This document shows, piece after piece, positions 19,270 to 63,793 of a stretch of 64,000 bases of DNA. The DNA is from Tubulanus polymorphus (taxonomy: Eukaryota > Animalia > Nemertea): NCBI RefSeq assembly GCF_964204645.1, contig NC_134031.1, positions 620,001 through 684,000 of the forward strand. The letters run 5' to 3'. The notes below the pieces were generated by a model. That model was not told the origin of the DNA. It did not search any database and saw only the letters and a program-made list of their open reading frames with translations. Numbering within the stretch: the first letter of the stretch is position 1; each line of letters opens with the position of its first letter. Position numbers and translations under genes: made by a program.

Positions 19270-19677
19270 TCTGATGTATCCACTTAGTTTTTACGCCGCA
19301 TTCGCCGGTTTCAAATCGATATATCGGGCTTTTCAAAAGTTCTATCGATATTCGTAGGAAGTAGTTTTCGATCGTCAGATCACGAGAATTCAAGTTCGAA
19401 TCTAAATCCACGAACCGTGTTTTTTGAGTAACCGTTCGTCGGAGTCGAACATTGTCATCGTTGCGGTATTTTTACACTGCAGGTTTTAGTGGAAGTCGAT
19501 TTCGTTCGTTTTATTGACGCGTGTTTTCTCTACGAGATGCAGATATTTCACTCGCGCGCGCGCAGACGACGGAAGCGACCGTGAACTCCGATTCCGGTAA
19601 GAGATGCCGAGTTTAAATCGCGACTGTTTAATCACCAGCGAGTGATTAATTATCTCTAGACAGGTGCGCGTCGTGTC

Positions 19678-19687
19678 GTGACGTCAC
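19678..19687. promoter_or_regulatory. CRE palindrome GTGACGTCAC in CpG-rich region upstream of the GPCR start
   Basis: Full TGACGTCA about 410 bp 5' of the ATG; function not demonstrated. Confidence 0.35.
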
Positions 19688-20836
19688 ACGAATGGAAAAT
19701 GATGCAGTTAAATGGTTGTCGTAGATCACGAGATTCTGCGATGAAATGTGCCCCGTGTAGAATCATCAACCGGTGGATTATTCAATGAAATCTCCCTGCG
19801 TTCGATCATTAACGCGAGGCAAATCGCTCTGAAATGGGATCAAAAAAACATTAATGATCGGTTAGATAGAAATTGTCTCAGCTTGTCCGTGACTGCCTGA
19901 GCCGCTATGGACCCATAATCATGACTTGGGTGGCATAAAGTCTCAGTTTCTCGTAGCCCGAGACATAACATCAACTACTATATTAGCATTTTAGAATTGA
20001 CACAATTTGGAATTCATCTTCTTGTTTGTGTAACAATAACTACTATGCAAGATGAAGTTTAACTATCAAACTATAAAAGACTTACTAATTAGCTCATTGT
20101 CATTCTCTTTGCTTCTACGTCAGAATTGACCGACGACAAGAACAACTTAAGGATTTGATCTGCGTATATACACATATACAAATGCGTCACGTTCATTTAG
20201 GGAGAACATGTTGTATTTCGAAGGTCTATCCCCGAGAGAACTTCACTCACATAGTTCTATCAAATGTCACCGAAACTTGTGTGAACAAATAAAAGTGAAA
20301 GGTGAAGCGCAGTCTAAGTATCAGGGGATGAACACGGGACGAATTTGCTGCATGTAATTACACTGTTATAGCCAGTCTTGTTACATGTTAGTTGTAATAA
20401 TTTCCGCCTCATAGACTTTCAAGGAAACCACGAGTGGCGATATGTTTAAAAAACTGATTTCCCTCGGTGATAACACTTGCCTAGATGGTCGACCGTTACA
20501 TTTGAAATGCACCAATCAACGAGTGGACTACGTGACTGGAGTCACTGATTGGATCAAACAATCGTCGGTTAAGATTTGAATAAAACCAAACACCGAGACT
20601 CGAATAGAAGCAGAGACCGCGCGGGCTGCATCGAGTTTAATATTTAATACATGATTTATGAGCCAAATTAGTTCATTTTCAGTAATTATCGAGACAGGTT
20701 CATCCGACTTTCGAACCGCAGACCATCGACGCGTAACAACCAGATGCGCCCAGTTACATTCCAAACTGTACTATAATGATAAAGAATGAGACACTGCTGC
20801 CAGAAGGGAACGGGTTTAAAAAAAAAGATAATGCCA

Positions 20837-21130
20837 TGTAAGTCAGCCTAGTTCATGAATGAGGAAGCAAAATTGGCGCCGACCATACTCGTAACCCTAA
20901 TCGTAGCTCGGCCGTAACCCTAACCCTAGCAGGAATCGAACCTCCGACCTTCTGTATGCCAGCCGAACATGCTAACCACCAGACCACACACCTGTGGTGA
21001 CTGACTCAGCGGGTTGGTAGGTTTGTGTGGTCAGTGTGGGTGACTGGTGACCGGTCAGGTGTGGGTGACTGGTGACCGGTCAGGTGTGGGTGACTGGTGA
21101 CCAGTCTAGCGAGGAACAATACCCGTTACA
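20837..21130 (-). mobile_element. TGTAA...TTACA element with tRNA-like Pol III A/B boxes (solo LTR of TRIM or SINE-like); relatives at 30998-31270 (-) and 46666-47135 (+)
   Basis: Minus strand: TGTAAC start, CACCTGACCGGTCACCAGTC repeats, A box TGGTCTGGTGG (20976-20986), B box GGTTCGATTCC (20932-20942), end GACTTACA. Confidence 0.5.
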
Positions 21131-22067
21131 TATCATTCATTCTCTGTTTACAAAGAGAGTTTATCTTAGATAACCGCGTTAAACAAGTGAATATCAAATC
21201 ATGTATCGTGTTACACAGTGTGGTATTTCACGTACACAGAATCTTCGTGTTTTATGTTTCAATCAAAATATAATGATGTATAGTATTCACCGGTGATCTG
21301 TTTGCGGTGCACACACAACAACTACCCGCCTGATTGGAGAAAACATCCGTACAAAAAATACACGAGAAAAGAAAATGATTTGAATTTATCAATGCGCGAT
21401 GTTGCGTGCTACGAATGTTCTAGGTGTTGGATATCTCTAGGAGATGATGTGTGGTCACGGCGCGGGGTATAGGGACCGCGCTGGGTTGTGGGCAGTCACC
21501 CGCGCGAGTGGTGACCGGGTGTGTGTAAGTCAAGGGTGAGCCTCTCTCTCGCTCTCACTCTCACACTCTCTCGCTTCTAAAGCGATGATTGATCGAGTTT
21601 TCCAATGATTGAACGCCCTCTCAAGAGACTTTAGATCGAGAGACTAAACAAATTTCTCGATATTTTCTCGAAGCTGCTTATAAATCTTTTTATTTCTCTT
21701 CATTTCCAATTTATCTGTGCATTAAATAAGGGGCACCGGGTAAACAGATTGAGATGAAATTCTTTTTTTAAGCCTGGAAATCGGAAAATACCGATGACAG
21801 ATCCGTAATAATCGAAACTGATCGAAATTAAGAACAAAAATAACCTCATACATATTTTGTTACCTAACACAATTAATGCTCGCTTACCAGGGCTTGATTT
21901 GCTGCTAACTAAGTACACACGATATAATGATACCGTTGAGAGACAATCGGACCCTGGCAAGCGATGATGATGATGTTGACTAGATATGTAGCGGTAAAGG
22001 TACCGGAAGTGAAGCTGTTCCTATACCGCTACATGGCCCAAGTATAGAATACAAGGTAATAGTGCGA

Positions 22068-41600: not shown

Positions 41601-44218
41601 AAGCTGCTTCTATATTTCGGGTCTCAGTTGGTTTCTAGTTTTGTACCGATCATATTTCTCATAGTTGTCATGAATGTCATGTAGGTTATGGAACCGAATG
41701 ACGAGAGGTTTTATTGCATCTTCATGCCTGCCGCCGCCAGTTGTCTTTATACAACTGTGAAGAAGAATGGCATTGATTTTATCTGGTCGGCGATCTCCCG
41801 GAGAACAGGGTTATCCATCTCTGGCTGATCTGATTCCGCGTATTGTTGCTTTAGAGCAGTATCTTGCTATCAGCTTACTTCCTGTCACTGTTTGTTGGAT
41901 GCCGTGTTGTACAGGATGGCGTGACGGCAGCGGTAGGCGACAGACAGTGAGAGAGACAGAGAGAGAGACAGCACTCGCTTAGCGCCACACGGTTAGACAT
42001 GACTATACACGCTAGATTCTGACAGAGTCATAACGTTTTTCGTGCGGATACGGAGCCAATAATAGTCGTCATCTTTCAGTGGAACACTGCGGATACTGCT
42101 CGCTATCTCGTTCATCGCCTGTAGGTTTCAGTTCAAATATCTAGATAGAAATAACAGCGCAGGAGGCTTAACTTACGAGGTAGGACAAACTAAGCTTTAT
42201 TTAACATTTTCTTAGGAAATGAGATCAAAAATTGTTTATAAATCTACTGTCTATTTATTTACTGTCTATTAGCGAAGATGCATCGTTTTCATTGCGACAT
42301 CGTTCGAAACTTCGATGGGAAAATTAGATTGTTTTATTTTTCATGTCCTTGAATTATTCGAAATGTCTTTAAAGATTCCGGCATCGATGTTTGATCAATG
42401 ACTGTGAAATGTCGGATTCCTGAGATTCACTTGTCTCTCTCTCGCTTCATCGCTGAGCAACTGATCATCAATGAGCGATTCATTTTAGGAGGCGGCTAGC
42501 ATTCTCTACAGATTTATATCAACAGATTAATGTTCCACAGTTGCCAGTTAGATTTAACTCCTGAGTTAGGAAAAATTCATTTTCAGTCTTGAGTCAAATT
42601 AAACTTCAGGATCTGCAGTTCCACATTTCTGAGTTAATATTTATCTCAGAGTCAACCGCACACTTACAACTGTGAAACTGGATCCTGAGTTCACAGTTTA
42701 CTCTAATTCACACTTTTGGAACTGGAACGGTAGCAAAATCTAACATGTATATCATACTAGTCAACATCACCGCGCTAACACTTCAATACAAGAGAAATGA
42801 ATTACTAAAATGTCGATATTCAACAACAAAAACTAAACCATCATCGCTTTTGAAAACGACTAAGAGTTGAACTGGTGACTGGGAGTCGGAACGCGGCGCG
42901 TGTAGCACGGAGAGACTCGATGGCTGCTGCTGCTGCTCGTGATATTGACAGAGACCCTGGATCTCAGAATCAGATTAACTTCAGATGTAGTGAAGAATTA
43001 ACATTCAATAATTCAATATCTTACACGATATTTCAATTAATTCTTCATGTTCTCAATGAGTTTCATCCAAGTGTTTACTACGTCGTTTATTTTATTCGTT
43101 CAAACCAACCTCAAGTTTACCTCGATTCTACTTTACTAAGAAGATTATAACTTTTGACTTCATGATCCAGTTAATCAGTGTTGTGAGTTAGAGTTAATTC
43201 TGAACCCAGGATCCAGTTCACGGTTGAGAGTTAGAGTTAACTCTGACTTGAAATCGGTTCATTTTCATTTTCATTGGCCTACTTCAGTACAAACTCAGTG
43301 AACGATTAAGTTTCGTGTAGTCTGGCGGCTCATCTTACAAAAATTTATTTCTCAAAACCTTTTAAGCCCAACTCGCAGTGAACTGCATTCTCTAAGTGAA
43401 AGGTAAAAAGCGCACATGATGACTAAAAGCTAGTCATATTTCTCTCCTTATCCCTAGCGCTATCGCGTAATTGCTTAATAGGTATCGGAGAGGCTTACGG
43501 CTAATACCGGTACCGTGGACAGCTGTTATCAGGGGACTTCAAGTATACCGTGTAAGACGCAATAAAGTGGCAATTTAGCCATGCATAAAGAAACCAAACC
43601 ATATTACTGGTAACCCTTACAGAATATTAATTACACTCTACTCCGTTACAGTGCATGGTTTAGCGAGTAACCGTATACCAACAGGGCATTGACGAGATGA
43701 TGGCCGAGTCCACCGAGTAGACCTGTACTACTGTGTATACTCGGTAAAAGTCGCCCACTAAATAATCTAAACGTGAACATCCAACTGTAAACATCTAACT
43801 GTAAACATCCACCTGTCAACATCTTTAAACTAGAATCAATTGTTGTTTGATATTATTCAAATGAAGTAGAGTTTAATGTTGACAAATTATCGAATTATTG
43901 AGATAAAGGTGAAAGAAGCTTTTTACGTCACTGTGATGTTTATCTTCTCACTGATATATGTATTTATAAACTATCCACTTCCACTGTTCCAACAGTTCCA
44001 CATAAGGTTTCACTCTTAAGCTTACTGAGATTGAAAACACAAAGTGGCCGAATTAGCCCCATATACGACCCATATAGGGCAATGTGTAGAGTTTGAGTAA
44101 ATCGAGGGATCTAGAAATGTATTAATGCGCAAGCTGAAATATGATAGCGTAGTTATATAGGGATTATATGAAAAATGGTCCTCGATAGAGCGTATTCTAC
44201 AGCTAATGACAAGCGACA

Positions 44219-45030
44219 CCCTACACACCAGTTAGGTGACGACTGTACAGGACGGTTGACAGTAGACACCCTACACACCAGTTACGTGACGACTGTACAG
44301 GACGGTTGACAGTAAACAACCTACACACCAGTTAGGTGACGACTGTACAGGACGGTTGACAGTAAACAACCTACACACCAGTTAGGTGACGACTGTACAG
44401 GACGGTTGACAGTAGACACCCTACACACCAGTTAGGTGACGACTGTACAGGACGGTTGACAGTAGACAACCTACACACCAGTTAGGTGACGACTGTACAG
44501 GACGGTTGACAGTAGACACCCTACACACCAGTTAGGTGACGACTGTACAGGACGGTTGACAGTAGACAACCTACACACCAGTTAGGTGACGACTGTACAG
44601 GACGGTTGACAGTAGACACCCTACACACCAGTTAGGTGACGACTGTACAGGACGGTTGACAGTAGACACCCTACACACCAGTTAGGTGACGACTGTACAG
44701 GACGGTTGACAGTAGACAACCTACACACCAGTTAGGTGACGACTGTACAGGACGGTTGACAGTAGACACCCTACACACCAGTTAGGTGACGACTGTACAG
44801 GACGGTTGACAGTAGACACCCTACACACCAGTTACGTGACGACTGTACAGGACGGTTGACAGTAGACAACCTACACACCAGTTAGGTGACTACTGTACAG
44901 GACGGTTGACAGTAGACAACCTACACACCAGTTAGGTGACGACTGTACAGGACGGTTGACAGTAGACAACCTACACACCAGTTAGGTGACGACTGTACAG
45001 GACGGTTGACAGTAGACAACCGTACACACC
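44219..45030. repeat. Highly homogeneous 50-bp minisatellite x 16
   Basis: CTACACACCAGTTAGGTGACGACTGTACAGGACGGTTGACAGTAGACA(C/A)C, exact 50-bp period, no spacers. Confidence 0.95.
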
Positions 45031-45615: not shown

Positions 45616-46012
45616 ATGCCGAATTCAAACAAACATCTACCATCCTCCGCTGACTGTAACGGAGGAACCGAACTTTGTCTCTTGGATGAGATACACGTCG
45701 ACGCATCTTCCGTACCGACCGATCACGTCGCCACGGCAACCACACAGCAACAATGCCGAAAATCGCCGACAAACTCCGCACAAAATAACAATCGCGCACC
45801 GACGCACACTCGTTCGGCGGCGCACGGAGCCGCACACGACGACGCACACGTCGATAACGAAGAGACTGCTGGGATACATGTGAAAACAATGCAATTTCGT
45901 AACTGGTGGCAACGAAGAACAAATTTGGAGAAATATTTAATTTGTATTTGTGTACTGTTTTTTTTCGCGTGTCTGTCGTTTGTGGTGGTCGCCTTCACCA
46001 GGGAATCATCAG
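45616..46012 (+). CDS. M13 metallopeptidase (neprilysin/ECE family), first coding exon: cytoplasmic tail and type II TM anchor
   Basis: ATG 45616; WWQRRTNLEKYLICICVLFFFACLSFVVVAF typical M13 juxtamembrane/TM; G|GTAATA donor, phase 1. Confidence 0.85.
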
Positions 46013-46677: not shown

Positions 46678-46992
46678 CTCCAGTCGCCACACCTGACTGG
46701 TATCCAGTCGCCATACCTGACTGGTATCCAGTCGCCACACCTGACTGGTATCCAGTCGCCATACCTGACTGGTATCCAGTCGCCATACCTGACTGGTATC
46801 CAGTCTCCGCACCTGACGGGTTTCCAGTCGCCACACCTGACGGGTTTCCAGTCTCCTCACCTGGACGGGTTTCCAGTCTCCGCACCTGACGGGTTTCCAG
46901 TCACCGCACCTGACGGGTTTCCAGTCACCGCACCTGACGGGTCACCAGTCATTACACATGACGGGTCACCAGTCATTACACATGACTGGTAA
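46678..46992. repeat. 24-bp minisatellite CCAGTCGCCACACCTGACTGGTAT x ~13, inside a tRNA-like element
   Basis: Direct tandem copies with graded variants. Confidence 0.9.
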
Positions 46993-49117
46993 CCACACCG
47001 GCCAGACAAATTCCCAATTCGCCTGAGCTCATTGGTCGTGTGGGTAAACCACTGGCTTTGAACGCAGGATCCTCGGGTTCGAGTCTTGCCTTCTCCGGCT
47101 ATATGCCTATATCTGGTTTATAGTTGATTTTAACATTCTTTTTCGACCTTAAGGACGCAATTTTTTTTGAAATATTTATCCTTTTTATTTAAATAAAAAC
47201 TTCTCCGGCTACGGGTCTTACGAGGCTCAATCCTGCACTAACAATGATTAACCATACCACGATGTAGGTCCCTTCCCTCCTGACTATACTGAGAATAGAA
47301 TTTAAAAATATGCCCATCACAATATTAATAATCGCCCTTATTCTATAATAGAATGGAGTCGCCCTTAAAGCACCCACCAGTCTCTGTGAAATAAACTCAA
47401 CAGGTAATTTGTGTGTCATTGAGAAGATTTTTCTGGAGACGATGTGTTTATCTTTATATACTGCAACGTGAATCGCTGATTGGAATCACTGATTAATCCC
47501 GCGGTAGTGATCATAGTTTCTTTAGGGATCTGATACGATGCACACCCGACATTTCAAAGTGCGTGTTGTATCGTGAACATTGAATACGCCGAACTGAGTG
47601 TGAATAATAATCAACAAGTACTCGTGAAGATGACTTTTAGGATATGATAGTCGAAATGTTGAATATTAGTTCAAGGAGCTGTATTCCTGAAAAATCTGAC
47701 TATTTGAATATAGTTGAAGTGTTGAACAGACTACTTTTAGCTCAAGGAAACATTTCCACTCTACTGTTCCACTCTACTGCTCCACTCTATTGTTCCACTA
47801 CAATACGGAGTACCAAGGGATTTAATATTTCACGTATAGTGTTGTGGGATGAATGGATGTGTCACAGTTCATGAATCCACACCAAAAAACAATCTAAGAT
47901 TTTCGCTATTTTGGCGGACAAATTATCTTTGATACAAAACATAGACACTTTTTATCATATTTTGTCTTGTCGCTGTATTGCAGAATTTCCAATGAAAGAT
48001 TCGCAACTCCATTAAACAGCCTTATATACTGAAATTGTCCTTTCTGCAATGTACCGATTCCACTCTACCACAAACATCAGCCGTTCTGAATGAGAGAAAC
48101 TCATAAAACGGCACGTGAGATTAAACAAAATCGCAACTGGAGAGCCGCAAAAAGAAATAAACGTTATTTCAAAACGAAGCTTGGTATGTGCTGATAACGA
48201 CAGTCAACCAGCCTCAGCCAGCCGTCCCTAGGAATAAATCCGATAGAATCAACGTCTTATGTTTTTATCCGATTTATCATAAAGAGCTCAGCAGATTTTA
48301 CCCTCGTTTCGTTCACATGTTGTGTTTTTGTTCGTGGCGGCATATGCTGCTTCAGTTTGAAATGTCTCACACACACACACATCCCGGAAATCTTCAGATT
48401 CCCGATCCAGATTCAGTTTCCCGATCCAGATTCAGATTCCCAATCTAGATTCAGATTCCCGATCCAGAGTTGAACAAATTGTCTTTTATACAATAACCTC
48501 AATGAGATGGAGATATTAGCGCTAGTTTCACGACGTGGGCCAAAGTTGATATTTCAATATATATCATAAATTCTATTCCTGATCGTCTGTTCGTTAACAC
48601 AGGACGGTTTTACCAATGAGTTTGTAAATATCGCATCCCGATGTGAATATCTCGACCCTGAACGGCCTGTGTATCAAAATCATAATTCGAGGTCGACTCG
48701 ATCCACTATATAAGAAAGAATCAGAAAGGTCTGACATGAAATATGAAAGAAATAACAGATCAGATTTTCGAATAAAAGAGGCGAGCAATAGGAAGATGAT
48801 ATTGACCTTTTTAGGGCAGGACCAGGTAGATTTCAACGAAAGACGAGCCCTGCACATTCTAATTAATCATTTCAATATCGGTTATTGATAACATTGAGAA
48901 ACTGCGATGATATTTTTTCGACATTTTGTCAATAAAACGTCTGCAATTTCTCTGTAGCAGAACAAAATTTCTCTAATGAACAGTCAATATTCAAAAGTAT
49001 TAAAGTGTCTGGTATTTGTAGCTCATGTCTCGTGTGAAGCCCGTGTATGAAGAGCTACAGCTATACCTGTATTATATAGATATATAAGAGAGTTCGGTCA
49101 GCGATTACGGGACATTT

Positions 49118-49534
<417 letters not shown>

Positions 49535-49772
49535 CAGTGCATGTAAATAAACGAGGGAAATGATAAATAGCTAATTGCTATAATCGTACTGCCAATATTG
49601 ACTGTCACAGTTACTAATGAAGATTAATTGGTAACGAAGCAGGTCTAGTTGTATGAGATTTATTGACTCTTCCACTTAACACTCACGCTGAGGTCCGCTG
49701 TTGATGCTGGTGCTGCTGCGCTGAGGTCCGCTGTCGGTGCTGGTGCTGTACTGCTGCTGGTGCTGCTGCTGG

Positions 49773-49803
<31 letters not shown>

Positions 49804-50492
49804 GGTGGTGGTGGTGCTGTTGCTGCTGCTGCTCTCACGCCGCTGCAACGTCTACCCCCTCCTCCCCGATTGTCGAAGGGCGACTCCCTGTTCTCACACC
49901 TTAGACCCTGTTTGTACCTAGTATCCTCGAATTTTCACCGAGTCCAAGGAGCAATTTGGAAAACAGCGGAAAACCTGTAAACAATCATTAAATGATCAAA
50001 CTATTCATTAGCGATGCATTAATACTTGAATTAGCTGCAGGAGCAGTGATTGATGACGTTCACACCGTGGACGATGTTTATATTGATAATATCGTTATAA
50101 CTATCTGTAGGTTATAAACATCATCGATACAGAGAGACTTAAACTCCCAACTGTACGGATCGGGTCCAGTGTAATATAGCGAGAGAAGGGGATAGGGGAG
50201 CGAGAAAGAGAAGGAGAGAAAGAGAGAGGGGAAGGGTGGAGTGGAGAGTGGAGAAGAGGAGGGAGTGACGGGGGGAAGGGGTGAGTTGAGAGGAGAGAGG
50301 AGAGAGAGACGTCAGACTATATTCAAAGATCTATCATTTCAGATATCAATAACTAAAACGACTTAATAAAAACATCTCATTCAATTTGCGCATTTTCAAT
50401 ATAAGCTGAAATCCGTTTATATTTTCAACCATTTTTTGTCCAATCAGCGAATTTATGATAGAATACTCTAATATTTGTAATATATTTTTCAG

Positions 50493-50534
50493 GCGAGACG
50501 ACGGTTTGTCTATCAGAGAACTGCGTTCGGACAG
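50493..50534 (+). CDS. M13 peptidase 42-nt exon (stalk Cys pair)
   Basis: tttttcAG / GTAAGA, phase 1-1; GETTVCLSENCVRTA matches the conserved C-x4-C of M13 enzymes; absent from ORF track. Confidence 0.9.
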
Positions 50535-51700
50535 GTAAGAGCTATAGCATTTTAATGAGTGTTTCATTTAATTAGGGAATAAGTACCGACAGTCACTCAC
50601 TGTACACATGTATCTACACGATACAGAGAGAGAGAGAGACAGCGTGCGAGCGAGTCGACACGGGGGTATTGTAAAATATATACATCGACTACAACAAAAA
50701 TACTTTTGAATTAATAATGACTTGTAGAACACGATACGTTTCAGGTAACAAGGTTTGATCGATTTTTACGGCCCACTTGTGACTCGTTAGAATCGGAATC
50801 TGGAGAGTGGGTTGGGTTGGATAATTTGCAATGAGGAGTTGTATAAGAGCTGTGCACCACCGCAAAACGCACACGAGTACTGACAATTAATTAGTACGTC
50901 ATACATCAGCGCCGCTTTGATTTTGCGGATAATATCAGAACTAAATAAGGCTTGAGTGTCTATTGTTCGCAGGTTTTATACTGTCGCTTATTTCTGCCGG
51001 ATCAAGATCACCTTGTGAACAACGTGAATAGCAATTTATATATAGCCTGAAAAAATGTGGTCTCCTGAAGAGTCAATAATCTCACCATTCTCGAAATAGA
51101 AGTTAATTGAGATAATTGATTAAAAAACGAATCACACTACAAAGAGACATGACATTATTTAATCGTTGTCCGGATATAACGTCTGTCTGTAAGTGTCAGC
51201 CCACGTTATCACGTTATCTAACGGTAAGAGACTCGTGACCACTCCTACCGGCGACGACACTGGAGGCTTAGATCTTAAAACCAGAATACAGAACCAATAG
51301 GCCTATGCAAGGTGGAATTGGTAGAATGTTTTATTCAAATTGAATGGTAGGCCTATTGGAAATATTGGTCCAGTAGCCTGTTATCGAGTCGACCAGCCCG
51401 ACCGATATAGCGACACCGAGATCGTTAACTGCGATGGAGTATTGACCCGCCCTCGGTCACTTATCGATAAAGCAGAACCTGTTACCATCGGCGCCAATAT
51501 TAAAAGTAGATTTCCGAGATCCAACAGCTAAATCACTCCCTCATTTTCATTATGCTTGTATTGAAACGACCATCCCTATTTACCGGGTTGATCTGGTTAA
51601 GGTTACATTGTTCAATTCTGAATTGCCGATCGCTAACTGTTGATATACGTTATGCCGAATTCGTTGAAACTTTCTCGCTTTGTTTTCTTTTCAAAAAAAG

Positions 51701-51862
51701 CTGCCAAAATCATGGAAGCTATGGACACGACGGTCAAACCGTGCGATAACTTTTATCAATTCGCCTGCGGCATGTGGGTGAAAAAACATATAATACCGGA
51801 CGATAAACCAAAAATCAATACGTTTATAGAACTTAAAGATGGATTAAGAATTAGTTTGAAAG
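51701..51862 (+). CDS. M13 peptidase duplicated exon A (candidate mutually exclusive)
   Basis: 162 nt, phase 1-1, AAG acceptor, GTACAC donor; AAKIMEAMDTTVKPCDNFYQFACGMWVKKHIIPDDKPKINTFIELKDGLRISLK. Confidence 0.85.
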
Positions 51863-52861
51863 GTACACGACGGGGTATACCCGCACGTTCTACTCATCAG
51901 CTACGCTTCTCAGTGCTGCCCTGTAACGAGCTTTTTAGAACTAGCATGCTATATTCTGTAGTTTTAATTTTTTTTGTAGTTTACTAGTGTATGGCTTGTT
52001 TATCTATTTTTAATGATATCCAATTTCTTTATCTGTTTCTCATTTTGCGAGGTTTGAATAATTTAACCAAACTTCACGACTGCTTCCTGAGTTGAGAGAG
52101 AGCCTAATTTGCATAAATCATTCATTTCTCAACTCCGGTCAAGGTCGAGGTCTTCTCACACTTCAATGGACATGAACGTTTTTTGGTCGGTTACTATACT
52201 GGTCAAAAGGGTAAACAAAACATTATTAGAATTCGGGAATCATGCTTGTCCATGTGCGTTACGAGTATTGCTCACATCATGCGATATATTGGCCGTCAAA
52301 TGGCCGTCAGTTTGTCGCTTGTCGTTTTATAACAGTTTCACTTAGATTATTTCAAATGAAAGCTTTCATACCGGTTTTATTATCGTAGTATATAAAACCA
52401 GCTACAACCAAAATCAACGAGAAAACGTTCATAGTCTGTAAACGGGCCAGTTGTACAGTGATGGCTTATATTTAGGAACTGCCTTCGGCCAACTTAGTTC
52501 TATAGCCAATCTATCAACTTAAGATCAGTATATTGACTCAAAACTACCACGTTTAGACTTCAGTCACAACTGCACAACTGGTCCCTGGATCTTTTATAAC
52601 TTATATATTTCTGGTGAGGTGAAGTGATGCATGAATAAACAGTAGAAGTCCTTTGCCACTGTTGGGGCCAATGAAAAATATGACGTTATAACGAATTTGG
52701 CAACGTTATAAAAAATCTTATTTCCTTTGAGTTTGAGTTAAATTGTGGGAATGTGATCTCTGAAAGATGCTGGCGTTTAGAGAGCGGTGTGGCAGCGTTA
52801 TAACGGACTTTGACTGTACTATAATCTCATGTAGCACGTTATTATTTGATGTTGTTTTTAG

Positions 52862-53023
52862 CTAGTATGATTTTATCTTCGGTGGATGTGGAAGTGGAAC
52901 CTTGCGATGATTTTTACGGGTTTGCTTGCGGTATTTGGGATAGGACTCATCCTATACCGGACGAAAAATCCGGTTATAACGTGTTCGAGAAGTTACTCGA
53001 TAATGTACAAGTTATGTTGAGAG
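52862..53023 (+). CDS. M13 peptidase duplicated exon B (candidate mutually exclusive)
   Basis: 162 nt, phase 1-1, TAG acceptor, GTATGT donor; ASMILSSVDVEVEPCDDFYGFACGIWDRTHPIPDEKSGYNVFEKLLDNVQVMLR. Confidence 0.9.
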
Positions 53024-53418
53024 GTATGTTCTGTCCCGGTCCCCAAAACCTCTCCTGGTCATCTCACTGTCCCTGCAACAAAAACAACTGTTAGTTAAAA
53101 GGTAAATACAGTAGAAGAATAACCACGATCGGACGCGAGTCTCTGGTGAGAGAACGAATCAATTTCGTATACTTTAGATTTTGATATTTTAATGAATTTC
53201 GTTTTCAAATTCTTAAATAGAAAGTTTTATAAGCGAGAAAACTTTCACGATGTATTTTCTTTATTTCTGTTTGACCATGATCAATAAATAAATCATTCGA
53301 AAGACAGTTTAAATCACATATCAATTTTGCCCGTGAAAGAATTGATGAATGATGTTGTTTAATATTGATACTGGTTTTAAAACCAGCCCTGATGAATTGT
53401 GTATTTATTCATTGTCAG

Positions 53419-53502
53419 GTTTGTTAGAAGAGCCGACCACAGAATCAGACTCGGACGCCCGAAATAAAGCTAAAGTGTTGTATAAATCCTGTATGAACAC
53501 GA
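53419..53502 (+). CDS. M13 peptidase exon
   Basis: 84 nt, phase 1-1; GLLEEPTTESDSDARNKAKVLYKSCMNT (KAK.LY.SCM motif). Confidence 0.92.
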
Positions 53503-53699: not shown

Positions 53700-53905
53700 C
53701 CCAAATTAAAGTGATCGGTGACGGTCCATTACGTAAGGTATTAGACACGTTGGACGGGTGGCCGGTCGTTGCTGGAAAATGGGACGAAAATCTGTGGAAT
53801 TTGGAGGAAAAGCTGGCGTTTCTTCGTGTGAAGTATCACGCGCCGCTATTAGTGAAATCATACGTAGGAATAGACGATAGAAATTCATCAGCTTATGTGC
53901 TTACA
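53700..53905 (+). CDS. M13 peptidase exon
   Basis: 206 nt, phase 1-0; GDGPLRKVLDTLDGWPVV...VGIDDRNSSAYVLT. Confidence 0.92.
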
Positions 53906-53932
53906 GTACGTACCTTTATCAGTGCGAGACAA

Positions 53933-54104
53933 GGGGTCAGTTAATCAGGGGTCAGTTACTCAGGGTCAGTTAATCAGGGGTCAGTTACTCAGGGTCAGTT
54001 AATCAGGGGTCAGTTACTCAGTGGTCAGTTAATCAGGGGTCAGGTAATAAGGGGTCAGTTACTCAGTGGTCAGTTAATCAGGGGTCAGGTAATAAGGGGT
54101 CAGT
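53933..54104. repeat. ~14-15 bp tandem GGGGTCAGTTAATCA / GGGTCAGTTACTCA
   Basis: Starts ~27 bp after an exon donor. Confidence 0.88.
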
Positions 54105-54695
54105 AAATCAGGAGTTGCTTCTGAGTTGCTCAAAATTGGTTTATTAAAGATAACAATCACAGATAAATGCTGTAATAACAATGCAATGTCAATTATCACT
54201 TTGCCAGTTATCCATTGGTTAAAACTGTCCCCAATATCACCCATAAATCCCAGTACAATAACTACCCTATAGTTCCCAGTACCACGCAATTTCACAATTC
54301 TCTTAGAAATCATTAAACTCGTATATACCGAATAGTTTTGATGTCACACACGTCTTTAACAAGTGCGAATTCAATTCGGTTTCTGCTCATTAAATTCAAA
54401 CCGGACGCGAAATTCTCTCATAAAAACATCTTCTAATGATAATAAGCGACGTATTGACGGCGAAGTTAAACCTATTTCATGTGTCATCGTCTGTTTCTTA
54501 ATACGGCAATTTATATCCCGCATACGACACGTGGAAGGCGCTTTCCTTGCGAATAGAAACCCGTAGTTAATGAAGCTACTAGGCGAAAATAATTGGTTTT
54601 AGTGACTAATTTGTTTTCGCAGCTTACGAAGAATGTCGAAACAATTTATCAGAGTTGTGGTTTTATGTCTAATTGGTTTTTGTGAATTTGTTTAG

Positions 54696-54878
54696 GTGAA
54701 TCAGGCGGGACTGGGTATGCCTAGTAGAGACTACTACTTGCAGGATATCGACTCGTTACATATAAACGCCTATAAGGAATTCATGACGAACGTTGCCGGC
54801 ATTCTCGGAGCCGACCCAATTCGGGCTAAAAAAGAACTCGCCGAAGATGTACTGAACTTTGAAATACAGCTGGCCAAC
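54696..54878 (+). CDS. M13 peptidase exon
   Basis: 183 nt, phase 0-0; VNQAGLGMPSRDYYL...VLNFEIQLAN. Confidence 0.93.
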
Positions 54879-54968: not shown

Positions 54969-55055
54969 ATTACAAAATCGTTGTCGGAACAACACGATGC
55001 CGAGGCCGCTTACGAGAAAATGACCTTGAAACAATTACGTAATGAAGTACCGCAG
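54969..55055 (+). CDS. M13 peptidase exon
   Basis: 87 nt, phase 0-0; ITKSLSEQHDAEAAYEKMTLKQLRNEVPQ. Confidence 0.9.
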
Positions 55056-55346: not shown

Positions 55347-55471
55347 ATTGACTGGTTGAAATACTTTAGAGGATTCATTCCGGCAGAACTGGACGAGACC
55401 GAAGAAGTGGTTGTACTTGCGAAATCTTATCTGAAAAATCTTGGAATTCTTATTCGTAAAACACCGAAAAG
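55347..55471 (+). CDS. M13 peptidase exon
   Basis: 125 nt, phase 0-2; IDWLKYF...EEVVVLAKSYLKNLGILIRKTPKR. Confidence 0.9.
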
Positions 55472-55550: not shown

Positions 55551-55653
55551 GATAATCTCGAACTATCTATTATGGCGGATAGTAATGGCGTACGCGCCTG
55601 AGTTGACGGATGACTTCACCATTCAGAGGAACATGTACATGAAAGTCATCCAG
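55551..55653 (+). CDS. M13 peptidase exon
   Basis: 103 nt, phase 2-0; IISNYLLWRIV (NYxxW motif). Confidence 0.92.
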
Positions 55654-56041: not shown

Positions 56042-56161
56042 GGAGTTGGCAGAGATAAGGCCAGATGGCAGAAATGTGTTGAGCTGGTCAACGAACGGTT
56101 TGGAATGGGTGTAGGAGCCCTGTTTATCAGAGATAACTTCAAAAAGGAAAGCAAGGATACG
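56042..56161 (+). CDS. M13 peptidase exon
   Basis: 120 nt, phase 0-0; ARWQKCVELVNERFGMGVGALFIRDNFKKESKDT. Confidence 0.93.
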
Positions 56162-56169
56162 GTATGTCA

Positions 56170-56450
56170 GGAATATAGCTACCACTGGAGGAACATAGCT
56201 ACCACTGGAGGAACATAGCTACCACTGGAGGAGCATAGCTACCACTGGGGGAACATAGCTACCACTGGAGGAGCATAGCTACCACTGGAGGAGCATAGCT
56301 ACCACTGGGGGAGCATAGCCACCAGCGGGAAGCTATCAACCACGTGTGTGCATATAGCTACCACTGGACAATATATAGCTACCAGTGGAAAAAGATAGCT
56401 ACAACTGGGGAACATAGCTTCCACTGGGGAACATAGCTTCCACTGGAGAA
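56170..56450. repeat. 20-bp minisatellite CATAGCTACCACTGGAGGA(A/G) x ~13
   Basis: Begins ~8 bp after an exon donor. Confidence 0.9.
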
Positions 56451-56607: not shown

Positions 56608-56706
56608 GCGCTTGAGATGATACACAACATCCGTGAAGCGTTCAATGAATTACTACTGGAGAATGATTGGATGGATGCTAAAACTAAAGCAGTAGCAAAG
56701 GAAAAG
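56608..56706 (+). CDS. M13 peptidase exon
   Basis: 99 nt, phase 0-0; ALEMIHNIREAFNELLLENDWMDAKTKAVAKEK (WMD motif). Confidence 0.93.
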
Positions 56707-56947
56707 GTACCGATAAATACCAGAACGTGTCGGGAATTGTTATATGTCAGTTACCAGTAACGCACTCCCCTCAGTTCATGTAACCCCGCCTATGTAAGCC
56801 CCGCTTGAACTTATGCTGTAGCGAGTAGATAAATAAATCAGAGTTTACTTAGACACCAAACATATTGGTCGTTGTTCACCTCTCCGGCGGTCTTGCTTAT
56901 TTTACTCAAACCTGGACCATTTAATGTGGCAATCATAGCCCACATTT

Positions 56948-56965
56948 TGGTGCCGTGACCAGGAT
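56948..56965 (+). other. Primer binding site complementary to tRNA-His 3' end
   Basis: TGGTGCCGTGACCAGGAT, 3 nt after the 5' LTR, is the reverse complement of ATCCTGGTCACGGCA-CCA (invertebrate tRNA-His 3' end as I recall it). Confidence 0.85.
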
Positions 56966-56997
56966 ATACAAGCAGTAAATTCAGAAACTCAGCCAAG

Positions 56998-58251
56998 ATG
57001 CCGTCGAAAGAAGAGATAATGCGAAATGCGCAAATTCGACAGATGACGAAACTTTTTGATCAGGCGAGGGATTTACTTCATTCGGAAAGTGACGAAAGCC
57101 TAGACAAATTGTCTGGCGTCATAACTAGAATACGTACAAAATTGGAAGTTATCGCAGGATATGATTCGGAACTGATTGCGAACGCAGAGTTAGGGAAACT
57201 CGAAGACCTCGTATGTGAAACCGATGATTATATGAACGAAATAAACATCGAACTATCAACCTTCATCGGATACCTCGAACGGAAAAAGAATCAAATCGAA
57301 CCGACAACGCGCATGAAATCCGAGCATCAAAAAACTGCGAAAAGACCGATCCAGTTGCCGAAGTTATCTTTGCCAACATTCGATGGCGATATTCTGAAAT
57401 GGCAAACGTTCTTCGATGGGTTTTTCTCGGCAGTTGATAGTGATGAGAACTTAACGAATATCCAAAAGTTCCAATATCTGTCCGCACAGCTAAAGGGCGA
57501 CGCTGCAAAAACGATCGAAAACCTGAGTTTAACAAACGAAAATTATAATCAAGCTTTGGAACTTTTGTTAAACCGGTACGGGACACCACACAAAATTGTG
57601 GCCGCATACATGAAAGCGTTGTGGGAGCTTTCACCACCGAGTGATCGCGACAACTCACTACGGAATTTCTATGACTCTCTGGAATCTTATATTCGTGGAT
57701 TAAATTCACTCGGAAAATCCGAAGAATCGTACGGAGATCTGTTAGTACCCATCATAATGGAAAAACTACCGAGCGGAACTAAACAACAGATTACCAGAGA
57801 CCACGGTAACAATGCTTGGAGCCTGACTGATCTAAGAAAGTCACTCCTTAAAGAAATTGAGGCCTTCGAGGCTAGTATCGAAAGCCTTACGATAGAGGAT
57901 GATTTTCCCGCCAATTCGCCGACCGTGGGAGCGTTCGCAGTTACGGCGAAAAACAGACATAATTTTTCACGGGAAAACGATCGAAAATGTGCGTTCTGCA
58001 AAAAGATCAATCACGTTGCGGTGGACTGTAAAACGTTTCCAGATGCTGAAAAACGCAGAGAAATTGTTGCTAGGGATAATTTATGCTTTAATTGTCTCTC
58101 GAGCGGTCACAAATCGACGAAATGCTTATCGAAAAACAGATGCAGAGTTACAAACTGTGGCAAAAAGCATCACACATCAGTTCATTTAGATGCAAAATCA
58201 ACCACACCTGTGGCCGCAAAATCAACCGATGAGAAAGCTGACAGGGATTGA
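56998..58251 (+). CDS. gag: BEL/Pao Gag
   Basis: LPKLSLPTFDG...W..F...F (DUF1759-type); three Cys/His knuckles CAFC..H...C, CFNC..H...C, CRV..C..HH. Confidence 0.93.
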   Translation: MPSKEEIMRNAQIRQMTKLFDQARDLLHSESDESLDKLSGVITRIRTKLEVIAGYDSELIANAELGKLEDLVCETDDYMNEINIELSTFIGYLERKKNQIEPTTRMKSEHQKTAKRPIQLPKLSLPTFDGDILKWQTFFDGFFSAVDSDENLTNIQKFQYLSAQLKGDAAKTIENLSLTNENYNQALELLLNRYGTPHKIVAAYMKALWELSPPSDRDNSLRNFYDSLESYIRGLNSLGKSEESYGDLLVPIIMEKLPSGTKQQITRDHGNNAWSLTDLRKSLLKEIEAFEASIESLTIEDDFPANSPTVGAFAVTAKNRHNFSRENDRKCAFCKKINHVAVDCKTFPDAEKRREIVARDNLCFNCLSSGHKSTKCLSKNRCRVTNCGKKHHTSVHLDAKSTTPVAAKSTDEKADRD

Positions 58252-61200
58252 CATCAGTATCTGGGCGCCGCCGATGGAACAGTGTTATTAAAAACAGCTA
58301 TCGCGAACGCAAAAAGTCGCGAAGGCGTAACGACTAACGTAAACATCTTGTTCGACGAGGGCGCTCAGCGGAGTTTTATTACTCAAAGAACAGCCGAAAG
58401 ATTATATATAAACAGTGAAGAAACCGAAACTATATCGATCAACACATTTGGCGCGAAACAATCAAGTGCGCGGTCACTGATTGTTGCGAACTTTACACTA
58501 TGTTCTGATGAAACCGACATACCGATAACGGCGTTAATTGTTCCACAAATTGCGTCGACAATGCGAAACCAAACCGGCAGATCTATCAAAGATTTACCGT
58601 ATCTGACAGGTTTGAAATTAGCGCATCCGTTTTCTACCGAATCACACTTCGAAATCGACATTTTAATCGGTGCCGATTTCTATTGGTCAGTGGTCGGTAA
58701 CCACACAATCCGCGGAAATGGACCCACGGCAGTATCTTCGAAATTAGGGTATCTTCTCTCTGGACCGTTTAGTGATTGCGATCCAATAAATACTGCACGA
58801 GTTTACAACGTGGATGTTACGTCACATCGTTCGGAGGAAGTCAACCTCCAAAAATTCTGGGATCTCGAATCCATAGGCGTAACTGATGCAACAGATGCGG
58901 CTTCAAAAGAATTCAATCTACTCGACTACTGTCAATCAAGCCTGACGACATCCGACACGGGACGGTATACTGCGAAGTTGCCGTGGAAGAGTGGACACGC
59001 CCCCCTTCCGACAAATTACTATGTTACTCGAAACATAACACAATCGATGATTCGTCGGCTATCGCCGCAAATTCGAAATGTTTACCACAACATTATCATG
59101 GATCAATTATCGCGAGACTTCATCGAAGAAGTCACAGATGATGACCGAAACATAGGTCATTATTTACCGCATCGCGCGGTCAAGAAGGAATCGTCAACAA
59201 CCCCTATCCGTATCGTCTATAACGCGTCTTTATCGACCGCGGGAAACCCTAGTTTAAATGATTGTTTGGAGACCGGTCCGACGCTGCTGAATGACCTCGG
59301 TTCAATCCTGATCAGATTCAGGTTGCATAAATTCGGATTGTCGGCGGATATCGAAAAGGCGTTTCTTCAAGTTGGTCTGCACGATGATGATCGCGAGTAT
59401 ACGAAATTTCTATGGTTGACTGATCCTAAGAATCCAGAAAGTGAACTCAAAACCTATCGCTTCAAGGTTATATTGTTCGGCGTGGTGAGTTCACCCTTTA
59501 TATTGAATGCTACTGTTCGTTTTCATCTAAATAATTATAATAACCATGTATCACGTGACTTAGTTAAAAATATATATGTCGACAACGCGATTAGTGGATG
59601 TGAATCTGAGAGCGATCTCATGAAATACTATACGAATATCAATAGCATAATGAAAAACGGCGGATTTAAACTTCAGTCTTATGCTTCTAACTCTTCGTTA
59701 CTAAAGGCCAAAGCAGATTCCGATAATTTATCGGACGAGAAAACTATTGTTTCTGCGCTCGGACTCCAATGGGATACGGTGAATGATACGCTGTCATTCA
59801 AAAACAAACAAGCGTTCGCCAATCCTGACTTGATTACCAAACGCGAAATCGTTAAGGCTGTCTCGAGCCTTTATGACCCGTTAGGATACGTCTCGCCTGT
59901 CCATATTAAGTCGAAGATGTTCGTACAGCAGTTGTGGACGGAAGGTTATGAGTGGGACGAAACCCTACCCGAGCGCGTAGTCGAATCGTGGATCTCGTTG
60001 ATAACGGAATTGCGTGAAATTAGCGAAATACGCGTTGATCGACGCTACTCGAAATCGGAAGCGAAATCGGAAGCTAAGTACGAATTGCACACTTTCTGCG
60101 ATGCGAGCCAATTGGCATACGGCGCTTGCGTCTATCTAAAACGTGGAGATCAGACGGTACTCGTCATGTCTAAATCGCGTGTGGCACCTGTTAAAAAACA
60201 TACGATACCGCAGTTAGAATTAATGGCCGCGTTGATTGGTGCTAAATTAACAGATTACGTTCGAAACAGTCTGATTACTGAAATAGTCATAACAAAGTGC
60301 GTGCTCTGGTCAGATAGCCAGATTGTGTTACACTGGATCAACTCCGAGAAAAAGCTTCCCGTCTTCGTAGCTAATCGCGTGCGTCAAATTAAATCGGTGA
60401 CAACTATCGGTCGCTATAAATATTGTCCGACGAGTGACAATCCGGCTGATATGTTAAGCAGAGGAATATCGTGCGAACAAATTACGCGATGCACGCTCTG
60501 GTGGAATGGCCCTAGCTGGCTTAGCAACGGTAATTATCCCACCTGCGACACGATCGATCGAGCAGTTTTGCTCATAACCGAAATGGACGAGGACAAACAG
60601 CCTGACGAAAAAATCTGCGAAAACAACGAAGTCGGAATATGTAACGTAATAGATCAGAACGATTTCACTTCGTTAACAAGGCTATTACGCGTAACCGCGC
60701 TAGTTCGACGATTTATTAAAAAGTCAAGACGCGAAAACCATGAATCGGATGAAATAACTGCTAACGAAATAGCAGAATGCGAAGATCTATGGAACAAAGG
60801 TGTTCAATCGAGTTACTTCAATGACGTGAAAGTTAGTTTAGAACATAAATCTAAGAAAAGGCCATCACTTGTAAAGAAACTTCGTTTGTTTTTAGAAGAT
60901 GATATCATTCGTGTTGGAGGCCGTCTCCATAACGCGCCCATCGGATACGATGCAAAGTTTCCGATATTGTTACCTCATTGTAGATATAGTGAATTAATCG
61001 TACTGGATTCCCATAATAAGGTCAAACACCTCGGTACAGAATCTACTATAACCGTAGTCCGACAAAAGTATTGGATTACTCGTGTTCGTCAAGTGGCTCG
61101 GAAGTTGTTGAGAAAATGCGTCATATGCAAATATATCACCGGTAAACCGTACTCGTTACCAAACTGCGCTCCGTTACAATCTTCGCGTTTGAAAGAGGCT

Positions 61201-61535
61201 CCACCCTTCACCGTCTGTGGTTTAGATTTCACCGGTGCACTACATCTTCGGTCGAAATCCGGGGAGGAGTCACTCGCGTATATATGCTTGTTTACTTGCG
61301 CGAACACGCGTGCCATCCATCTGGAAGTGGTAACGGACATGACTACGTCAACATTCCTACACGCGTTGAGGAGAATGGCTGCCAGACGTTCGTTACCACA
61401 GAAAATAATATCGGACAACCAATCAACCTTTATTGCGAGTAACAATGCTATCAAAAAGATATACGAATCGATCGAAACCCGAAAGTACTTCAGCCTACAC
61501 CGATCAGAGTGGGTCATGATAACTCGTCGAGCCCC
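58252..61535 (+). CDS. pol: BEL/Pao Pol (aspartic protease, RT, RNase H, integrase N-part); same frame as gag after a single TGA
   Basis: LFDEGAQRSFI, ADIEKAFLQV, YVDN, FCDAS, HHCC zinc finger, GLDFTG, SDN. Confidence 0.93.
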
Positions 61536-62279
61536 TGGTTTGGTGGATTTTACGAAAGGCTAGTTGGAATAACAAAAACCGCGATCAAAAAAGTTCTGGG
61601 GCGTGCGCGACTATCCCTGCTGGAATTGATTACGATCGTATCAGAGACTGAACAAGCTGTAAATAATCGCCCGATATCGTACTGTTCATCTGATGTGGAC
61701 GACCCAGAACCTTTAACCCCGTCACATTTCCTTCACGGTCGCGTTCTCACGAGTTTACCGCATCTGTTCGTAAGTTACGATGAACTGACCGACCCGACGC
61801 TTGGAAATATGCCGTCAGAATTTGAAAAACGTTCGGTGCGAATCGGTTCATTAAAACAACATCTGTGGAAACGTTGGGCTGAGGAATACGTAACAGCCCT
61901 ACGCGAAAGACACATCCAATTTAAAAATCGCGGATTAACTGGAAATACCATCAGAAAGGGTGATGTCGTGTTAGTACACGACGACAATCATAATTCGCGT
62001 CTGAAATGGAAACTAGCACTGGTCGAGGAACTCGTTCCGGGGAACGACGGCTTAGTTAGAACCGCTAAGATCAAAATTTCGAATGGCAGGACTAATCGAC
62101 CAACTAGCAAACTCTACCCTCTTGAAGTGCGCGCCGCAGATCCCTCGAACACGTGCAAACCGGACTCAAACGTAAATTCTGCACCCGTCACACGTCGTTC
62201 GACGAGAAAGGCAGCTGCCGAGGCTAGAAATAACATCAGTAGATGGGCTAACGTGCTGTCTGATACATGTAGTAGTTAA
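61536..62279 (+). CDS. Integrase C-terminal part, displaced by a 1-nt frameshift
   Basis: (P)WFGGFYERLV carrying the catalytic Glu, NNRP, PLTPSHFL, W..W..EY, GNDGLVR, RP..KLYPLE. Confidence 0.9.
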   Translation, partial: WFGGFYERLVGITKTAIKKVLGRARLSLLELITIVSETEQAVNNRPISYCSSDVDDPEPLTPSHFLHGRVLTSLPHLFVSYDELTDPTLGNMPSEFEKRSVRIGSLKQHLWKRWAEEYVTALRERHIQFKNRGLTGNTIRKGDVVLVHDDNHNSRLKWKLALVEELVPGNDGLVRTAKIKISNGRTNRPTSKLYPLEVRAADPSNTCKPDSNVNSAPVTRRSTRKAAAEARNNISRWANVLSDTCSS

Positions 62280-63013
62280 TTAATTGATAACCGCTCAAGT
62301 CAACGCTAGGTCACTCGGAGACCTAAACAACAAACACAACGCAATGTAATAGACTTTATAATCTTAGTTTTAGAATTAAACACATCATTTTTAGTTGTCA
62401 GTAGTTCCTTATCTGACTATCATAAATTTATAACAATATATATGCATCATTTATTCGAATATCGATATTATTTAGTTGTAGTAACATTTTTCTTAATTAC
62501 ATCTATCTAGTAATTTTCTGTCGCCCGGGAGAATGTCGGGAATTGTTATATGTCAGTTACCAGTAACGCACTCCCCTCAGTTCATGTAACCCCGCCTATG
62601 TAAGCCCCGCTTGAACTTATGCTGTAGCGAGTAGATAAATAAATCAGAGTTTACTTAGACACCAAACATATTGGTCGTTGTTCACCTCTCCGGCGGTCTT
62701 GCTTATTTTACTCAAACCTGGACCATTTAATGTGGCAATCATAGCCCACAGAACGATAAAGGAAGCGATTATGTCCTGCGAGTTTCTCTCTACTCATCTT
62801 TAAAACATTTGCCAAAAATTAACATAATCGATTGTCCTGGAATTTCGCTAGATGTGCATCGTTCAGATTCATAATAATTGGACACCACTTTGAATAGAGA
62901 CAGTTCAATGCGCTTCAAAAGGCCGCCATTTTGGAGAGATCTATGAAACTCGCTTCTACATGTATTACAACATTATCCTACCCATATTTGGAGGAAAAAT
63001 TGTATATTTTTAG

Positions 63014-63091
63014 GCTGATGCAATGAATGAAAGGATCGGGTACCCAGAATTCATCACTAAACCGGATGAACTGAATAGCTATTATAAAAGG
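63014..63091 (+). CDS. M13 peptidase exon
   Basis: 78 nt, phase 0-0; ADAMNERIGYPEFITKPDELNSYYKR continues the exon before the retrotransposon. Confidence 0.93.
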
Positions 63092-63176
63092 GTAAGTTCG
63101 ATAAAGGCAGCAGAATTTCTACTGATAAATAACCGACTGATATCAATCAACGTTTCATCTATTTTCTAATCTTTAG

Positions 63177-63280
63177 CTGGAATTTACGGAGGATCATTTT
63201 TTCGATAACGTACTGAAGATTGAACAGTTCGACGCGAAGAGAAACTTTGAAAAATTGCGACATTCAGTGGATAAAAACAG
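63177..63280 (+). CDS. M13 peptidase exon
   Basis: 104 nt, phase 0-2; LEFTEDHFFDNVLKIEQFDAKRNFEKLRHSVDKN. Confidence 0.9.
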
Positions 63281-63370
63281 GTCAGATTCATCTTTACGTA
63301 TCCAGCTATATCTGTTTAACTAAAGGATCGGTCCATTTAATATTTCAATATCAAATATATGTATTTACAG

Positions 63371-63429
63371 TTGGGAACAAGAACCAGCCATCGTCAATGC
63401 CTTCTATAATCCGAATACCAATGATATAG
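63371..63429 (+). CDS. M13 peptidase exon (VNAFY substrate-binding motif)
   Basis: 59 nt, phase 2-1; WEQEPAIVNAFYNPNTNDI. Confidence 0.94.
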
Positions 63430-63673
63430 GTAAGGGGCCCAGCTATCAGCTTTTAACTCGTTAAAACATGATAATCGCAGTTCTACAGTTGTGAGTTAGA
63501 GATACCTCTGAACTCTGGACCCAGTTCCACAGTTGTGAGTTAGAGTTAACTCTGAGATGAAGTTTAAATTCTAATCTAACTATTTAACTGTGAGTGAACT
63601 GTGGAACTGAGTCTCTATAGTTTACTTGAAATGTGAAAACGAATGAATGTTTTAATGATGATATTATTTGTAG

Positions 63674-63793
63674 TGTTTCCGGCTGGGATTTTACAACCGT
63701 TGTTTTATAGCGCTGATTTCCCGAAATCGTTGAACTACGGAGGAATCGGAGTTGTAATAGGTCACGAGATCACTCACGGATTCGACGATAAAG
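63674..63793 (+). CDS. M13 peptidase exon (HExxH zinc motif); gene continues beyond window
   Basis: 120 nt, phase 1-1; [12 protein letters not shown]...[20 protein letters not shown]. Confidence 0.96.

Follow-up and report, generated by a model that had tools for sequence, protein, structure and literature searches.

A class of duplicated exons is known that are used on an either/or basis and whose variable residues cluster at functional sites (PMC7954323). Such homologous mutually exclusive exons originate from tandem exon duplication (PMC7954323, PMC9741552, PMC8373072), and in coq-2 they switch the substrate of an enzyme (PMC7434440). In Dscam1, srp and Ate1 the choice is made by docking/selector systems, in which competing selectors form intron-intron duplexes placed to loop one exon out (PMC4691838, PMC6071210, PMC7797038). 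For the M13 peptidases, Arg102 and Arg110 of neprilysin line the S2' subsite and are thought to give the enzyme its dipeptidyl-carboxypeptidase activity (PMC7822871, PMC4121237). Variation in S2' is predicted to set specificity across the family, with S1' staying hydrophobic (PMC2259306). Human neprilysin and ECE-1 carry S2' variants (R/R and R/W, respectively) in separate genes, whereas the locus described here holds two variants in one gene.

The variants are carried by exons A and B, a tandem pair in the nemertean Tubulanus polymorphus, within a window of 64,000 nt (the whole stretch of DNA analysed; Table 1). The pair resembles known mutually exclusive exons in its equal length and phase, tandem order, conserved fold and variable residues at a functional site. 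For the known cases exclusivity and isoform function are demonstrated, whereas for A and B we infer both. The principle is known; searches of titles and abstracts returned nothing relevant on nemertean neprilysin or on neprilysins with mutually exclusive or duplicated exons, and no matching report of an M13 peptidase case. The pair is real, lineage-restricted and probably functional. Our preferred reading, held at slightly better than even confidence, is that a duplicated Nep1 exon would be taken once per mRNA to yield two S2' variants, with an RNA duplex aiding the choice.

The host gene is Nep1 (neprilysin-1), an M13 zinc endopeptidase. Exon-by-exon mapping recovered a complete M13 peptidase with the VNAFY, HEITH and GENIAD motifs intact; the last exon lies just outside the window, the gene running to ~65300. 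A profile search matched a RefSeq neprilysin-1-like protein of T. polymorphus, and the M13 fold and domains PF05649/PF01431 are present in the A-containing RefSeq protein. In a quick tree the Tubulanus protein is sister to Lineus Nep1 (SH-aLRT 85), within a clade that includes Drosophila Nep1 (SH-aLRT 100). Exon boundaries are the same in the orthologues from Drosophila, Lineus (XP_064642954.1) and Lingula (XP_013379560.1), which also keep the three motifs intact. However, these orthologues possess one exon, reading S/F/H or S/F/A (Lingula G/F/H) at the positions equivalent to human 102/106/110, where Tubulanus has two, reading K/F/K and G/F/L. Human neprilysin and ECE-1 are not one-to-one orthologues of Nep1 (PMC2259306).

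Table 1. Features of the Nep1 locus, in window coordinates.
Feature	Position	Strand	Remarks
First coding exon	45616..46012	+	Encodes cytoplasmic tail with type II membrane anchor; ends in phase 1; DCNGGTEL motif and transmembrane segment common to Lineus Nep1
42-nt exon	50493..50534	+	CxxxxC motif; upstream partner of A or B
Candidate branch point of exon A	51632..51637	+	GCTAAC, predicted from sequence; ~65 nt before AG, no intervening AG
Exon A	51701..51862	+	K 51811-51813, F 51823-51825, K 51835-51837 at human 102/106/110; weak acceptor (A-run before AG), weak donor GTACAC
Candidate selector element	51886..51900	+	Just after donor A; complementary to 53143-53156
MITE-like high-copy repeat	52443..52586	.	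Terminal inverted repeats; in A-B intron; very high read depth
Exon B	52862..53023	+	G 52972-52974, F 52984-52986, L 52996-52998 at human 102/106/110; consensus-like acceptor (T-run, TAG) and donor (GTATGT)
Candidate docking element	53143..53156	+	Follows exon B; B would be looped out by pairing with 51886-51900
Downstream constitutive exon, 84 nt	53419..53502	+	Joined to A in RefSeq XP_074654520.1
Peptidase_M13_N exons 1-4 of seven further	53700-53905, 54696-54878, 54969-55055, 55347-55471	+	
Peptidase_M13_N exons 5-7 of seven further	55551-55653, 56042-56161, 56608-56706	+	
LTR retrotransposon, intronic	56728..62750	+	Identical 217-nt LTRs, 5-nt target duplication, empty site in second copy
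Four exons	63014..63793	+	Last is the HEITH zinc-binding exon, 63674-63793

Two RefSeq models cover the gene. XP_074654520.1 starts inside A and omits B, A being joined to the 84-nt exon, and the start of XP_074654077.1 lies beyond both exons; no B-containing protein was found in the 90% cluster of the two models. Two residue differences assign XP_074654520.1 to a second copy of the gene and XP_074654077.1 to the window. This second copy comprises the gene from window position 50863 onward and lies on the minus strand from C7:5,156,402 down to at least 5,130,176. It is 96-99% identical to the window and lacks the 5' exons and the intronic LTR element. A contig of run X1 joins the intron variants of the second copy unbroken to the 42-nt exon, and the most likely origin of the second copy is therefore an alternative haplotype retained in the assembly; a true inverted duplicate is the less likely alternative. 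The uncollapsed haplotype has probably split the RefSeq annotation into two 5'-incomplete models. As a probable haplotype, the second copy serves as a polymorphism control and carries no independent evidence of conservation.

Exons A and B are both 162 nt long, preceded by AG and followed by GT, in phase 1-1, and both are open in the frame fixed by the 42-nt exon upstream and the 84-nt exon downstream. They are separated by 999 nt (51863-52861). Between them 24 of 54 amino acids are identical (23 of 53 whole codons plus a split Ala codon), as are 87 of 162 nucleotides in a gap-free alignment. When searched exon by exon, the two scored 83 and 81 bits against a profile of the segment, the top non-exon background match in these loci remaining below 10 bits. 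The original prediction of a tandem duplication, with equal length and phase, intact splice sites, gap-free alignment and this level of identity, thus agrees with the locus. GCTAAC, the candidate branch point of exon A, is also present in the second copy.

Both exons look selected, as the same prediction had held. Identity between A and B at codon positions 1, 2 and 3 is 30, 34 and 20 of 53, with third positions near saturation, and their flanks are unrelated (24-27% identity). Against six orthologues, codon positions 1 and 2 are far better kept than position 3 in both exons. Moreover, all 11 columns conserved in at least 97% of 129 orthologues are kept in both A and B. In simulations of a neutral copy at 0.4 changes per site, with indels uncounted, the frame and splice sites survived in 3.9% of runs, and seven invariant residues were additionally intact in 0.01% (1/10,000). 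Pooling the second copy and three DNA runs, A and B together contain no substitutions where 4.3 are expected, versus 37 in 2815 nt of intron (P 0.014; 0.12 for A alone or B alone). The introns also contain several indels across copies and runs, and the exons none.

These data bear on whether a single exon is in use now, the other having been used for long and then recently silenced or reduced to trace level. The weak splice sites of A, the longer branch of B, RefSeq models that show only A and the one RNA-like run, silent on the region, would all fit such a history. However, neither exon has acquired a substitution or indel across the two assembled copies and three DNA runs, whereas the introns have, and the splice-site pairs of both exons are kept. 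We consider it unlikely, and return to the preferred reading, in which both copies diverged and would have been retained.

The equivalent exon is single, with the same boundaries, in Lineus, Lingula, Capitella, Owenia, Patella, Liolophura, Littorina and Priapulus, and is also single in a Tubulanus paralogue at C7:5.053 Mb. The presence of both exons had been proposed as something to look for in orthologues; single-exon orthologues were found, but the pair was in none of the eight species, Lineus among them; Tubulanus is the one palaeonemertean covered. The duplication is therefore lineage-restricted. By contrast, most human homologous mutually exclusive exon events are described as ancient (PMC9741552). 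A and B share four residues that nearly all these orthologues lack (I3, Y18, F20 and D33), which fits duplication after the split from Lineus. A tree of 159 nt of the exon neither joined A and B nor rejected their joining (p-AU 0.06 for an A+B clade), and B is the longer branch. A and B evolved faster than the rest of the gene, with distance ratios to the rate of Lineus of 1.75 and 2.12 for the two exons, versus 0.72-1.30 in eleven other exons. A search of representatives returned no match above 58% identity, and a search with the exon B reading frame returned no short relatives. Those two-stretch matches from the representative search that were inspected are repeated gene fragments and no A/B pairs. 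In the preferred reading, the 162-nt exon encoding residues 66-119 (human numbering) would have been duplicated in tandem after the split from Lineus, both copies then diverging faster than the remaining gene.

The substrate-pocket residues were mapped with HMMER, which placed A and B each gap-free on chain residues 13-65 of human neprilysin (1dmt). These correspond to residues 66-118 if the 696-residue chain starts at residue 54, and the arginines then fall at 102 and 110 as in the papers cited above. Human Arg102/Phe106/Arg110 are K/F/K in A and G/F/L in B, so that both the assignment of the human S2' residues to this segment and the residues originally read there by manual alignment hold. 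A superposition on neprilysin had been suggested as well; for the form covered, the A-containing RefSeq protein XP_074654520.1, a neprilysin-like fold is predicted with a pLDDT of 95.5 and a TM of 0.98 to 1dmt. Tubulanus Nep1 likewise shares its fold with human ECE-1 (3dwb, TM 0.96), and in both human enzymes the equivalent segment bears the S2' residues.

The original prediction had read a difference in substrate preference from comparison with the human enzyme only. Its S2' mapping stands, but that comparison misplaces the starting point. Orthologues have S/F/H or S/F/A at 102/106/110, with Ser102 in 91% and Ala, His, Ser or Tyr at 110, not R/F/R; therefore A and B are both derived, in opposite directions. 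At 102 and 110 both exons hold rare residues (at most 2% of 130 orthologues). Such rare sets comprise 10 positions in A and 12 in B of 42 variable ones, and the joint chance of 102 and 110 falling in both is ~0.004 if A and B are independent, which they are not fully. Phe106, on the S1' side, is common to A and B, so the change lies on the S2' side, and a shift in preference at P2' or the C-terminus is to be expected rather than a new primary specificity. The preferred reading would give two type II membrane peptidases alike in zinc site and S1' pocket, the S2' lining being basic in A (K102/K110) and small and apolar in B (G102/L110). Like human neprilysin, A would prefer substrates with an acidic P2' residue or a free C-terminal carboxylate, and B would be without that preference; Lys at 102 and 110 may not act like Arg.

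The change extends beyond S2': A and B differ at 30 of 54 positions, and both also have rare residues at 67, 112 and 116. Net charge over residues 91-115 is +2 in A and -2 in B. It is conceivable, and in our view rather unlikely, that both exons are used singly with little change in substrate preference, the isoforms being distinguished by folding, stability, trafficking or substrate entry, or being close to equivalent and kept by tissue-specific splicing. Most A/B differences indeed fall outside 102/106/110, the shared Phe106 belongs to S1', the main driver of M13 specificity, and position 110 already varies among orthologues. Against this, the Ser102 that prevails in orthologues was left by both exons in opposite directions, and 102 and 110 are in the rare set of each.

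The use of both exons in mRNA, and their mutual exclusivity, are predictions from the sequence. The runs covering the region are DNA-like only, the one RNA-like run contains nothing on this stretch, and splice joints were absent from the four runs. With a spacer of 999 nt, ordinary GT donors and exons of 54 codons each, joining A to B would meet no steric, U12 or frame obstacle, and none of these modes of enforcing exclusivity fits. The spacer and frame argument of the original prediction is upheld in this respect, but its conclusion that an active mechanism is implied was too strong, as exclusivity could also be leaky if transcripts with both exons or neither gave products that are lost as protein. 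The exon carries two invariant cysteines, and in human neprilysin the cysteines of the equivalent segment are disulfide-bonded to the catalytic domain. Their loss or doubling should spoil folding, and selection for exactly one copy would follow whatever the mechanism.

The same absence of steric, U12 or frame barriers would suit exons spliced as independent cassettes, in which case transcripts with both or neither would be common and the faulty products would be cleared as protein. A related reading has B starting a shorter transcript from an internal promoter: a Lineus isoform (X2) starts internally, and Met is the second codon of exon B. We regard either as quite improbable, given that products with zero or two copies of the cysteine pair should misfold, and that the A-B interval yielded neither a signal-peptide exon nor another CxxxxC exon.

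On the preferred reading, B would be the default owing to its stronger splice sites, and A would be chosen when a 14-bp duplex between the post-A and post-B introns loops B out. No other pairing between these introns is as strong as the candidate duplex (Table 1; -19.8 kcal/mol), which ranks first among 12 intron blocks. Shuffling equalled it in 7 of 400 cases, and the duplex is identical in the second copy. It emerged post hoc after eleven pair scans and without covariation, and is therefore a lead that resembles the docking/selector systems rather than a member of them. It would account for only half of the exclusion. Whereas Dscam1, srp and Ate1 have competing selectors, one selector was found here, without a competing partner for B, and it is known from one species. 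Two other candidate structures fared worse in the other copy: pairing with a second partner at 51223-51235 is broken by three substitutions, and a hairpin that would hide the B donor (-20.4 kcal/mol, 5/200 shuffles) is weakened by a substitution at 53034.

If the preferred reading is true, Tubulanus holds a natural matched pair of M13 peptidases differing only in the S2'-bearing segment. Such a pair could be used to test directly whether M13 substrate choice is set by S2' variation, as predicted (PMC2259306), and one gene could tune neuropeptide breakdown by tissue. A bolder version, which we entertain as a tentative possibility, is an RNA-structure-guided toggle between a basic-S2' enzyme converged on the human carboxydipeptidase preference and an apolar-S2' enzyme for amidated or internally cut neuropeptides; together with the duplicated catalytic exons of a paralogue at C7:5.04 Mb, this would make M13 active sites repeatedly modular by exon duplication in nemerteans. 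The case is so far confined to one species, and this genome holds many candidate either/or exon pairs.

Several repeats lie in and around the gene. The MITE-like repeat between A and B does not belong to the proposed switch. What looked like a degenerate copy of the 42-nt exon at 52459-52506 (0/368 controls) was rejected, since this sequence falls within the repeat and matches its consensus gap-free; a Cys-rich reading frame at 52237 is attributable to chance (17/175 controls). The intronic LTR retrotransposon, which appears BEL/Pao-like on reading its proteins, is young and sits 21 nt after a donor; at least 8 near-full-length copies occur elsewhere at 98-100%. Minisatellites and microsatellites occupy 44215-45030, 46679-46995, 49117-49833, 53932-54112 and 56169-56448 in and around the introns.

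Lastly, other M13 loci were inspected. M13 genes are clustered on the minus strand of C7 at 5.05, 5.15, 5.19 and 5.48 Mb, the last being ECE-like at the A/B segment (R/F/W). In a neighbouring neprilysin paralogue at C7:5,039,300-5,046,200 the HEITH exon and a later VWCG exon are each present twice. Identical doubled internal exons ~11 kb apart in the Littorina Nep1 locus (52600-68450) are probably an assembly duplication. The Lineus Nep1 locus contains, at 19300-21300, a tandem array of ~40 units of 50 nt, each a copy of the second half of the exon that follows the A/B-equivalent exon.
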